A DNA stretch of 63,220 nucleotides, the filler included, from Octopus bimaculoides (taxonomy: Eukaryota): assembly GCF_001194135.2 (NCBI RefSeq). It is 6 parts of 5 records of this genome, joined end to end, with 100 filler letters (N's around TTAATTAATTAA, not from the genome) between each part and the next. Parts side by side here need not be neighbours in the genome. Positions count along the whole stretch, not along the records: positions 21,785 to 52,061 come from NC_068983.1; 5 more parts are not named here. One strand, 5' to 3'. This document shows positions 21,454 to 51,000 of this stretch, in pieces. The notes beneath the pieces were generated by a model, which saw only the letters and a list, made by a program, of their open reading frames with translations, did no database searches and was not told the origin of the DNA. The first letter of the stretch is position 1. Every line of letters starts with the position of its first letter. Made by a program: the position numbers and the translations under genes.

Positions 21454-21835
21454 TTGTGTACTTGCACGTGTATGCTTTTGAGAGAGCGAGAGACGAAGAG
21501 GTAGAGAGGGGGAGAGAAAGGAATAGGGGTAGTTAAAAGTTTTCTTATGACTGCTTCTCTTCACTGCCTATTACTTCATTAGAAATCTAAGGATGCACAT
21601 AAGCACATAATAGAGAAAAATGAAACAAATATGGACGACTTGCTCCGAAACACCACCGAGTGGGGAACACTTCTCAAAAATAACNNNNNNNNNNNNNNNN
21701 NNNNNNNNNNNNNNNNNNNNNNNNNNNNTTAATTAATTAANNNNNNNNNNNNNNNNNNNNNNNNNNNNNNNNNNNNNNNNNNNNATATATATATATATAT
21801 ATATATATAAATTCATAAGAATGGTACAACAAGGT

Positions 21836-25778: not shown

Positions 25779-26357
25779 TCACCTCTTCTTTTTAATTTGT
25801 TTGTTCATTTTTTTCTTTTTTTCTATCATTTCAAACATAACATCCATCGCTTCGATAAGTCCCTCGCCGGTCACAGCACACGCTGGCTGAACGTGCCATA
25901 GTAAACCCGGGGAAGCTTCGTTTAATGTTAAAAATTTCTCTATCTCTTCCGGACTCATCGACGCCGGCAAGTCCTGTTTGTTAGCTATAATCAACACGGG
26001 TAGACTGTTGCCTTCCAGGCTACGTAGTAACCGTAGTAACTCTACCCGGGCCTCTTCTAGTTTTTCTCGGTTTACGCTGTCCACTACGAACACAATACCG
26101 TCAGCAGAACGGGTGTAAGATTTCCATAAGGGTCGGGTTTTGTCCCGACCTCCCACATCCCAGATGCAGAAAGTAGCACCTTTTGCTTTACCAGTTTTAA
26201 CACGAATCTTTTCGTAATTAAACCCTATTGTTGGTACTGGGTTCGTGTACTGGTCGAACTTAAGCCGATACAAGACAGTAGTCTTGCCTGCAGAGTCTAA
26301 TCCCAACATAGCAAGTTGAACAGAGGGACCATCAAGAAGCGATATATGTCCTCCCAT
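25779..26357 (-). CDS. ARL4: ADP-ribosylation factor-like protein 4 (ARL4A/C/D-like small GTPase), 192 aa, single coding exon
   Basis: ATG at 26357 gives MGGHIS (MGxxxS myristoylation context). Motifs: G1 GLDSAGKT, switch I PTIGFN, RPLWKSY, G4 ANKQDL, HVQPACA..GEGL and a basic C-terminal tail KKKKMNKQIKKKR, as in ARL4C. The ORF-track GTG start at 26441 is probably UTR. G3 reads DVGGR rather than DVGGQ. Confidence 0.95.
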   Translation of the reverse strand: MGGHISLLDGPSVQLAMLGLDSAGKTTVLYRLKFDQYTNPVPTIGFNYEKIRVKTGKAKGATFCIWDVGGRDKTRPLWKSYTRSADGIVFVVDSVNREKLEEARVELLRLLRSLEGNSLPVLIIANKQDLPASMSPEEIEKFLTLNEASPGLLWHVQPACAVTGEGLIEAMDVMFEMIEKKKKMNKQIKKKR

Positions 26358-49079: not shown

Positions 49080-51000
49080 CCGGAGTTTTCCAAAAATCCA
49101 CCCAGGGCTGTTAAACGGAAAATTCTATTTTCAAAACTATTTTTTGTCTTAAATAACCGCCCACCTATAATAAGCGCCCATGGGTGGTAATATGGAAGTA
49201 AAATATTTCACCTAGGAAAAACAAAGATATTCTCAAAAACCATATTTATTTTATACAATTCCATTGAACTTCTATCGTTTCAGTTTTCAGATATATAGAC
49301 ATAAAGAAACTGAAACAGCCTTAAAAGAAGTAGCATATTAAAAAATATTCTGAAATTAACAATGGATCTATTAGGAAATATTGAAAATTAAACTGTTGAA
49401 AACATGAATAGAAGCCTCGTATGAACAAATAATGTCCTTGGGCATTTATGGTAGAATAATAACCGAATAGTTTCAAGTTTGATATCACGAATTTCTTCAT
49501 TTGTTGCTTGGCCATAATTCACATCAGCAAATTTCATTTACTTGCATCTCATCTTCAATTTTGTCATTATGTGCATCTGGTGCATTTACCTCAAGGCCAG
49601 GCAAAATATCCTCTAAGCGTGAGTTTAAGAGGCTATGTTCTACAGTCTGTCCACGAGGAGCAATTCCACAACATTCAAAAGCACGCTTTATAGTTTCTTT
49701 ATTTAAAGTGACAACATCTTGGGTCACAAAGTTCACTATAACTTGATAAGAAGGTCTTTTGCGTCATCCTTTATTTGTATACTCCTTTTTGCCATTTGAA
49801 AACCAATTCTCCCATTCAGCACGAAGGGCTTTCTTGAAAGGATCAATAATTGAAACATCTAACGGCTGCAAGCAAGATGTTTTAGGAGGTATAAGTTTGA
49901 GAATTGTATTCCTACGTTTGAACACTTCTAGGAGCTCTGTTTTCTTGTGCACTGAGCAATCATCCATGAATAGCACTGAATTTTGAGCAGGGAATAGTTG
50001 TGCTGTTCTCTGCTCAAGCACTTTGTCAGCCCACAGCCTCACGAGTTCATATGTGATTGATTCCCTGTTGGAGACTGTTCAGTAAATTTGATTTTAGGCA
50101 CGTTCTTCAATCCTTTAAGGACAATTATTGTTTTCAGTACCTTTGCTGCAGCATTAACACACAACACAGCAGTAAAACGAGCTTTGGCAGCACCACAGTG
50201 GCTAGCATCTATATTTTCATTGCCAACAAAGTCTATTGCTGTTGAACTCAGCTTGTCAACGTATACAGGTGTTTCATCCATATTATAGATCTGGTCAGTT
50301 TACTTATCTGCTGTTAATACTGGAATGCAATTTAGATAGTGACTTGCGATTTGTGCCTGTTCTCCAAGTGTTTTATTGTCTGTTTGACCAACATGTGTAA
50401 TCTTTCTCACAGTCAATTTATTCCATTTCATGAAATTGAAAATCCATTTATCAGAACATCTAAAGCTGTTCATTTCAATTCCAAACCTTTTTACCAATTC
50501 AAAAGTACATTCCCGTAAACAGCGATAATTTACAATTATATTGTTTGCACGCTGAACAACAATCTTCTGTAGGAGTTCAATCTCTAGATCCCTATGTGCT
50601 GGTCCTCTACCTCCCCCAACCGATCTGCGCCTCCTCTTGTCTGACATATGGATCAACTCAGTTTCTTTTGTTCATCATTCTCTTAATTGTTTTCTATCAA
50701 ATTCCTGTCTCTTGACGCAGCAGATAAATTGCCAGAATGTTCTTTCACTCGTTTAATAACACTCAATTTTTCACTAATGGTATATGATCGTTGAACACGT
50801 TTCGATATATTTTCTTTCGACTTCATTATTGGGAATAAAAGTCCTTTGAATTTCTCTACAGACGTAGAGCAAATGAAGGTCTAAACAGAATGCAAACAAG
50901 AACACTAACTCTGTTTCAACTTTTAATCTCAAATAACCGGCCATCCAAATCAACGCCCATGGACGATCTAATGGATGGGTAGATTTTTGAAAAACCCCGG
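49080..51000 (-). mobile_element. Full-length (1921 bp) pogo-superfamily DNA transposon, frameshifted, inserted into a SINE B
   Basis: TIRs CCGGAGTTTTCCAAAAATCCACCCA / TGGGTAGATTTTTGAAAAACCCCGG. TA TSD at 49078-49079 and 51001-51002. The SINE resumes across the insertion. Confidence 0.93.
49470..50800 (-). pseudogene. pogo transposase (HTH-psq, CENP-B HTH, DDE_1) broken into about 5 ORFs
   Basis: EKLSVIKRVKE; FRCSDKWIFNFMK; MDETP; LFMDDCSVH..CLQPLDVS (about 34 aa between D2 and D3); IKRAFECCGI. Confidence 0.9.

Follow-up and report, generated by a model that had tools for sequence, protein, structure and literature searches.

The ARL4 gene of Octopus bimaculoides encodes arginine in place of the catalytic switch II glutamine, a replacement that is fixed in every coleoid sequence recovered and is one of several at this position within molluscan ARL4. 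The gene lies on the minus strand of a 63,220-nucleotide stretch of the O. bimaculoides genome (assembly GCF_001194135.2), referred to below as the window, within the piece at positions 21785–52061 that comes from NC_068983.1. The residue, its fixation, the selection acting on it and its distribution among taxa were all read directly from the sequences compared, and from these we infer, with somewhat better than even confidence, that octopus ARL4 binds GTP with no useful hydrolysis and would be a membrane recruiter that is 'on' for as long as it is present, under the control of synthesis and turnover.

An intact ARL4 gene with arginine at codon 71

ORF finding and translation revealed an intact single-exon ARL4 open reading frame (ORF) of 192 amino acids at 26357..25779 on the minus strand, with its ATG at 26357 and its stop codon at 25779–25781. 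An intact, conserved ARL4 ORF with a CGG arginine codon at the site of the catalytic glutamine was what the first-pass annotation of this DNA had described, and both points were borne out. Codon 71, the reverse complement of 26145–26147 (CCG on the plus strand), is CGG and lies in the context W-D-V-G-G-R-D-K-T-R-P-L-W; in phmmer alignments to solved Arf6 structures, Arg71 stands directly opposite the Gln of WDVGGQDKIRPLW. The ARL4 locus together with 1 kb on either side is identical between the window and chromosome CM046603.1 of GCA_001194135.2. The features of the gene are as follows.

25779..26357, minus strand: complete single-exon ARL4 coding sequence (CDS), 192 codons plus stop (ORF, Pfam Arf match, ARL4C/ARL4A named matches)
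26340..26357, minus strand: N-terminal M-G-G-H-I-S, Gly2 nearly invariant (sequence, alignment)
26280..26303, minus strand: P-loop (G1) G19-L-D-S-A-G-K-T26, intact (G19, G24 and K25 invariant)
26181..26195, minus strand: interswitch insertion T55-G-K-A-K59, an ARL4 hallmark absent from Arf1 and Arf6 (five-residue gap in Arf6; present in all ARL4 relatives)
26145..26159, minus strand: G3 motif D67-V-G-G-R71, start of switch II (D67, G69 and G70 invariant across ARL4)
26145..26147, minus strand: codon 71, CGG, Arg at the catalytic switch II Gln site, equivalent to Arf1 Q71 and Arf6 Q67 (sequence, Arf6 alignment)
26136..26138, minus strand: Thr74 of switch II (alignment column comparison)
25971..25982, minus strand: G4 motif N126-K-Q-D129, guanine specificity, intact (invariant)
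25782..25820, minus strand: C-terminal polybasic tail KKKKMNKQIKKKR, residues 180–192, resembling a nuclear localization signal (NLS) (sequence, alignment with other ARL4 tails)

The identity of the protein was supported by several lines of evidence. It matched Pfam Arf (PF00025) with an E-value of 8.4e-52 over residues 12–177, the whole G domain, and the named proteins among its best 120 matches were nearly all ARL4A or ARL4C, a few being auto-named 'ARL11' or 'hypothetical'. In neighbour-joining (NJ) trees it grouped with molluscan ARL4, and its identity to ARL4 of vertebrates, arthropods, annelids and a brachiopod was 58–66%. The five-residue interswitch insertion T55–K59 aligned opposite a gap in Arf6, and the elements GLDSAGKT, T43, DVGG, NKQD and CAV, which include G1, G3, G4 and G5, were all present and conserved, the canonical WDVGGQ being replaced by WDVGGR. 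As WDVGGQ is common to nearly all Arf-family members, it is no ARL4-specific marker; on sequence criteria, WDVGGR leaves the orthology unaffected and the protein is an atypical ARL4. Judged by its nucleotide-binding motifs, which are kept, it is not a nucleotide-free pseudoGTPase. Gly2 and Ser6 of MGGHIS fit the N-myristoylation consensus and constitute a predicted signal. At the other end of the protein, a C-terminal NLS of ARL4 is described in PMC3424131, and the lack of introns is typical of Arl4 genes (PMC8358228). The AlphaFold2 (AF2) model was confident, with a predicted local distance difference test score (pLDDT) of 86 and a predicted template modelling score (pTM) of 0.85, and in Foldseek it was closest to GTP-state Arf6/Arf1 (template modelling score 0.92, root mean square deviation 1.6–1.8 Å), a normal Arf fold; these two analyses inform on fold integrity and are silent on the role of Arg71.

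Arg71 is fixed across coleoids

The 90%-identity cluster around the window protein contained eight members, namely proteins from Argonauta hians, Octopus vulgaris/sinensis and Sepia (Acanthosepion) pharaonis, three Logan read-assembly proteins and one ENA assembly protein, and DVGGR was found in 8/8. At the DNA level Arg was encoded in all ten coleoid sequences, comprising six genome assemblies (the O. bimaculoides window, O. vulgaris, O. sinensis, A. hians, S. pharaonis and an ENA decapodiform assembly) and four read-assembled Logan contigs. Four sequences used CGG (the window, O. vulgaris, O. sinensis and one further octopod contig), Argonauta used CGA, and five used CGC (S. pharaonis plus four more contigs of decapodiforms). 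Comparison of ortholog DNA, which the first-pass annotation had proposed as a check, thus gave Arg throughout the octopods and cuttlefish-type decapodiforms sampled, with no Gln codon in the other assemblies. The Logan contigs were colinear with genomic DNA over 3–4 kb; the gene being intronless, RNA and genomic reads are indistinguishable among them.

The ORF was intact in all ten coleoid sequences, that is, uninterrupted in the window and in the five other genomes as well as in the contigs. By the Nei-Gojobori method the ratio of nonsynonymous to synonymous substitution (dN/dS) was 0.007 between Octopus and Argonauta and 0.04–0.07 among Octopus-type sequences, and between octopods and decapodiforms the proportion of synonymous differences (pS) was about 0.88, i.e. 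saturated, at a proportion of nonsynonymous differences (pN) of 0.068. Coleoid ARL4 is under strong purifying selection. Since Arg was kept while the third base of its codon turned over, the substitution predates the octopod-decapodiform split, and three synonymous Arg codons together with saturated synonymous sites place the retention of Arg71 far beyond chance.

The deposited ARL4 protein of S. pharaonis (P0123, CAE1331201.1, 297 amino acids) is mis-modelled, with a start four residues late and a low-complexity spliced-on tail. The genome of this species (L007:2989-3567, GCA_903632075.3) carries an intact 192-amino-acid single-exon ORF whose layout is identical to that of the other decapodiforms.

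Search for a Gln-type cephalopod copy

When the window protein was used as query, no Gln-type cephalopod ARL4 was found among the named matches in the best 120 of about 4000, and identity fell from 99% in the coleoid cluster directly to 66%. The best non-coleoid match among those listed, at this 66% identity, was P0002 (L003, Logan SRR29346471), a 192-amino-acid protein with Gln (CAG) and with coleoid-like length and N-terminal spacing, which falls outside the coleoid clade in the NJ tree and may belong to Nautilus or to some other thinly sampled class of molluscs. Using this Gln-bearing relative as query likewise revealed no Gln-type cephalopod ARL4 among the named matches in the best 120. 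These searches provide good evidence, although not proof, that octopus ARL4 is the single ARL4 orthologue of the animal and not a side copy. Of the earlier suggestion of a naturally activated paralog, 'activated' survives as the most reasonable reading of what the protein would do, whereas 'paralog' is not supported, no Gln-type cephalopod ARL4 having appeared among the named matches listed.

The catalytic glutamine has been replaced repeatedly in molluscan ARL4

A set of 201 ARL4 sequences was assembled, within which a mollusc-anchored clade was defined as the smallest clade containing Octopus, Patella, Mercenaria and Mytilus; it held 64 representatives and left 137 sequences outside, 45 named arthropods, annelids, nemerteans, a brachiopod, a priapulid, hemichordates and a lamprey among them. 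The residues at the catalytic position were distributed as follows.

Lys: mollusc-anchored clade 28/64; outside 0/137
Gln: mollusc-anchored clade 19/64; outside 137/137
Arg: mollusc-anchored clade 8/64, coleoids only; outside 0/137
Ala: mollusc-anchored clade 4/64, mussels; outside 0/137
Glu: mollusc-anchored clade 3/64; outside 0/137
His: mollusc-anchored clade 1/64; outside 0/137
Asn: mollusc-anchored clade 1/64; outside 0/137

A residue other than Gln was thus present in 45/64 sequences inside the clade versus 0/137 outside (Fisher exact p = 5e-30). The first-pass annotation had raised the question whether Arg is common at this position in invertebrate ARL4 proteins. For Arg itself the answer is no, but in molluscan ARL4 the place of Gln is often taken by another residue, which was never the case outside the mollusc clade (0/137).

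Lys was found in 28/28 gastropod representatives, among them 14 named species that range from Patella to Aplysia (Patella, Lottia, Candidula, Physella, Aplysia, Lymnaea, Babylonia, Biomphalaria, Batillaria, Bulinus, three Elysia species and Pomacea), all of which have D-x-G-G-K-D-N/K-M-R-P-L-W. The Lys codon was AAA in two Patella-type assemblies (one of P. vulgata) and in Aplysia. Mytilus-type sequences carried Ala, encoded by GCA, and other bivalve-like sequences had Glu or His or showed the motifs D-x-C-G-E or D-x-C-G-N. The motif D-x-E-G-K occurred in a second ARL4 paralogue of gastropods. In an NJ tree built from 181 columns with the codon-71 site excluded (500 bootstraps), the coleoids and the gastropods each formed a clade with 100% support and the bivalve-type sequences one with 71%. 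Within the bivalve-type clade, Gln-bearing sequences adjoined the Glu form (Pinctada as sister, 100%) and the His form (100%). The deep nodes received 26–84% bootstrap support depending on the sequence set, so that the clade boundary is soft while the inside/outside contrast is firm. Taken together, the tree and the residues point to at least seven independent losses of Gln, to Arg, Lys, Ala, His and Asn and at least twice to Glu, as a minimum estimate.

Four extra molluscan ARL4 paralogues (P0328, P0338 from Babylonia areolata, isoform X2, P0345 and P0356) have the G3 sequences D-x-E-G-K, D-x-C-G-E or D-x-C-G-N, and the gastropod pair among them has the P-loop GLENxGKT. Such degenerate G3 motifs suggest an expansion of molluscan ARL4 accompanied by drift towards pseudoGTPases.

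A library-wide search of representatives yielded for the most part Arf proteins that are not ARL4 or have several domains. In it, Arg at the catalytic position was also seen in P0199, P0202, P0206 and P0230 (D-L-G-G-R, D-M-G-G-R, D-F-G-G-R), which are divergent, mostly multi-domain or tandem Arf-like proteins. Because of this sporadic occurrence, Arg71 is not unique in the wider Arf superfamily.

A second switch II change at position 74

Position 74 was Leu, Val or Ile in 136/137 of the non-mollusc ARL4 sequences. Among molluscs, coleoids and most Gln-type bivalves have Thr here, whereas gastropods have Met. Further mollusc-wide changes were found at positions 14, 85, 110–111, 119 and 174. On this alignment, switch II bears a clade-wide change besides the replacements of Gln, and the change at position 74 may record the point at which the catalytic Gln became dispensable.

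A GTP-locked ARL4 as the proposed function

The catalytic switch II Gln was exchanged for Arg before octopods and decapodiforms diverged, and purifying selection has held the Arg since. In the mechanism that we propose, binding of GTP and of membranes would be preserved by the nucleotide-binding motifs, the N-terminal signal predicted for myristoylation, the insert between the switches and the polybasic C terminus, all of which are intact. With no Gln to position the attacking water, and a long basic side chain in its stead, GTP hydrolysis is expected to be very poor, and the Arg71 protein should resist arginine-finger GTPase-activating proteins (GAPs) as do Ras Q61R and Q61K. ARL4 would then be a constitutively GTP-bound recruiter, for example of cytohesin-type effectors, the activity of which would be set by synthesis and degradation and not by a GTPase cycle.

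Work on related proteins is consistent with these steps. GAP-stimulated hydrolysis in the Arf family depends on the switch II Gln, as does the arginine-finger mechanism of Arf GAPs (PMC6724607). K-Ras Q61K, Q61L and Q61R were reported to be 'completely inactive' and Q61H weakly active, with no measurable effect of NF1 on K-Ras Q61R (bioRxiv 10.1101/2025.11.04.686643). ARL4 is in any case unusual in its regulation: neither a guanine nucleotide exchange factor nor a GAP was known for it before 2026, when TBC1D15 was reported to act as a GAP on Arl4D, and the Q80L form of Arl4D stays locked-on in cells that contain TBC1D15 (PMC13035273). The vertebrate ARL4 offshoot ARL11 is considered to be constitutively GTP-bound (PMC12722892, PMC8358228). 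Within molluscs, the frozen Arg of coleoids and the frozen Lys of gastropods suggest a use for the basic side chain as such, for instance in clamping the gamma-phosphate or in ordering switch II, as opposed to a tolerated loss.

Several points weigh against a GTP-locked ARL4. The loss of hydrolysis in molluscan ARL4 would be an extension from Ras and Arf mutants, and some GTPases function with a residue other than Gln at the catalytic position. TBC-class GAPs (Rab GAPs), moreover, can donate a glutamine in trans. The sole reported ARL4 GAP, TBC1D15, has a TBC domain (PMC13035273), and a GAP of this type together with functional non-Gln GTPases means that hydrolysis might persist. The invariance of Arg and Lys indicates that a basic residue matters, not how it acts. 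The number of losses is a minimum, drawn from a distance tree with weak deep nodes in which many sequences come from taxon-unlabelled read assemblies, and the coleoids sampled were octopods and cuttlefish-type decapodiforms, no match being identified as squid or Nautilus.

These points lead to the alternative of a rewired switch, in which Arg or Lys at position 71 forms a built-in finger to the gamma-phosphate, or a TBC-type GAP supplies the catalytic residues, and ARL4 still cycles. A long basic side chain occurs in 36/45 of the non-Gln mollusc sequences, its invariance over very long times within coleoids and within gastropods suggests a positive role, and the domain class of the only GAP reported for ARL4 would fit (PMC13035273). 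We nevertheless regard this alternative as unlikely, given that Arg or Lys at the equivalent Ras site abolishes both intrinsic and GAP-stimulated hydrolysis (bioRxiv 10.1101/2025.11.04.686643), that Arl4D Q80L is locked-on despite cellular TBC1D15 (PMC13035273), and that bivalves tolerate Ala, Glu, His and Asn, so that no single chemistry is required.

A more elaborate scenario, which we consider rather improbable taken as a whole, would have ARL4 escape GAP control on the mollusc stem, after which a basic catalytic residue was positively selected in two classes, these being the most species-rich or most complex classes of molluscs. The residue would serve either as a phosphate clamp, giving permanent GTP binding and an abundance-controlled scaffold, or as a finger in cis, giving a slow GAP-independent timer, and the coleoid Arg could have existed first as an adenosine-to-inosine (A-to-I) edited isoform that later became genomic. 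The remodelling of position 74 may, as a conjecture, be linked to the escape from GAP control on the mollusc stem.

An origin of Arg71 as a hard-wired edit had also been offered in the first-pass annotation. On this view an ancestral coleoid CAG would have been edited by adenosine deaminase acting on RNA (ADAR) to CIG, read as Arg, and a genomic A-to-G change would later have fixed Arg. This concerns the origin of the residue and not its function, and is compatible with a GTP-locked protein. It invokes a single A-to-G step from CAG to CGG, of the kind that editing mimics; P0002, the closest Gln-type relative listed, uses CAG but shows no specific grouping with coleoids. As at hard-wired A-to-I recoding sites, Gln may have become Arg through a second-position A-to-G change in a heavily editing lineage, and within the ARL4 set Arg is confined to coleoids, the lineage of massive recoding (reviewed in PMC5705066). 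The need for editing did not hold up. Unlike such recoding sites, the residue was altered by other mutations in molluscs outside the recoding lineages, to Lys (AAA, gastropods), Ala (GCA, mussels), Glu, His and Asn, which are changes that editing cannot make; CGG occurs in Octopus only, Argonauta having CGA and decapodiforms CGC; and no cephalopod with A at this site was present among the sequences recovered. As the same residue was replaced otherwise in other molluscs, ordinary mutation and altered constraint suffice, and we assign the edit a low probability. For studies of cephalopod editing it follows as a caution that a coleoid Gln-to-Arg difference alone is no evidence of a hard-wired edit.

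Neutral drift, by which molluscan ARL4 would have become independent of hydrolysis and the identity of residue 71 without consequence, has a very low probability in our judgement. At least seven independent replacements by six different residues within one phylum, preceded by the mollusc-wide change at position 74, speak for drift, but the replaced residue is frozen, as Arg in 8/8 coleoids with three synonymous codons and as Lys in 28/28 gastropod representatives, and Gln is retained in 19 sequences of the mollusc clade, whereas drift predicts variation within clades.

An artefact, whether through base-call error, polymorphism of the strain or the decay of a pseudogene or retrocopy, is a negligible prospect: a single-exon gene could be a retrocopy and the surrounding assembly is gap-rich, but an intronless CDS is normal for Arl4 (PMC8358228), no other ARL4 copy was present among the listed named matches, base-call error and polymorphism, both entertained in the first-pass annotation, are rejected by Arg in ten concordant coleoid sequences with three synonymous codons, and decay is rejected by intact ORFs with dN/dS of 0.007–0.07.

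Relation to known GTPases

ARL4 proteins control cytohesin/Arf6 activation, actin remodelling and cell migration, and the way in which ARL4 is switched off has, to our knowledge, been an open question for 30 years. Octopus ARL4 resembles vertebrate ARL4A, ARL4C and ARL4D in Gly2, the interswitch insertion, the polybasic tail and the intronless CDS, and shares family and architecture with ARL4 of arthropods, annelids and brachiopods. Non-mollusc ARL4 proteins, however, keep Gln (137/137) and have Leu, Val or Ile at position 74 (136/137), whereas the octopus protein has Arg71 and Thr74. The 'active' mutants of ARL4, Q79L, Q72L and Q80L, are artificial, whereas the octopus Arg is natural. The gastropod and bivalve proteins, annotated as 'ARL4C' in Patella, Lottia, Aplysia, Lymnaea, Biomphalaria, Pomacea, Mytilus and other genera, are orthologous to it and have often replaced Gln with the other G motifs intact, but they form separate clades with Lys, Ala, Glu, His or Asn, Arg being confined to coleoids.

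Outside the ARL4 family, oncogenic Ras Q61R and Q61K and the equivalent G-alpha Gln mutants carry changes at the same position, with the same substitutions, and are GTP-bound with hydrolysis lost (bioRxiv 10.1101/2025.11.04.686643). The Ras changes are somatic and pathogenic and belong to another GTPase family, whereas that in octopus ARL4 is an ancient germline change kept by purifying selection; the two would be biochemically equivalent on our reading. ARL10, ARL13A/B, ARL15, ARL16 and ARL11 are naturally Gln-less or thought to be permanently GTP-bound and regulated outside the GTPase cycle, and the 2025 review that treats them lists ARL10, ARL13A/B, ARL15 and ARL16 as lacking the switch II Gln, ARL4 being absent from this list (PMC12722892). 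These atypical ARLs are old, distinct paralogue families in which the deviation is family-wide, in contrast to ARL4, a canonical family that deviates in one phylum. A eukaryote-wide survey of the ARF family covers the origin and introns of Arl4, but not catalytic residues or molluscs (PMC8358228), and the one paper in which full-text searching found ARL4 together with octopus is unrelated. Gln-less small GTPases are well known; the literature searched contains no description of an otherwise canonical ARL family that has lost the catalytic Gln specifically in one phylum.

The repeated loss of Gln, with the replacement kept for hundreds of millions of years, constitutes a natural experiment that speaks for an ARL4 able to function independently of a GTPase cycle, and the residues found in molluscs (Arg, Lys, Ala, Glu, His and Asn) are ready variants for vertebrate ARL4. 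ARL4 would thereby join the ARLs with lineage-specific 'pseudo-switch' behaviour, which should interest those who work on small GTPases or on the cell biology of molluscs.

Other features of the window

Upstream of the ARL4 start, short non-coding blocks at window positions 26547–26663, 27098–27218 and 27390–27515 are 75–78% conserved between Octopus and Argonauta, for a synonymous divergence (dS) of the ARL4 CDS of about 0.6. The three blocks are candidate promoter or 5' untranslated region elements.

No credible protein-coding ORF besides that of ARL4 was found in the piece at 21785–52061, and Rfam and tRNA scans of these 30 kb gave no matches. An ORF of 118 amino acids at 50300–50656 on the minus strand had a weak match to PF03221 (Tc5/pogo transposase helix-turn-helix; E-value 0.0017, 18.7 bits, under the 22.2-bit cutoff) and is probably a decayed fragment of a pogo/Tigger-type transposon. 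Runs of N, representing assembly gaps, lie near 29.2–29.9, 30.9–31.9, 32.6–32.9, 35.9–36.7, 38.1–38.3, 41.6–41.8, 42.4–43.1 and 46.2–46.5 kb of the window, and are flanked by TG/CA-type and TATG-type microsatellites and by homopolymer-like low-complexity DNA.

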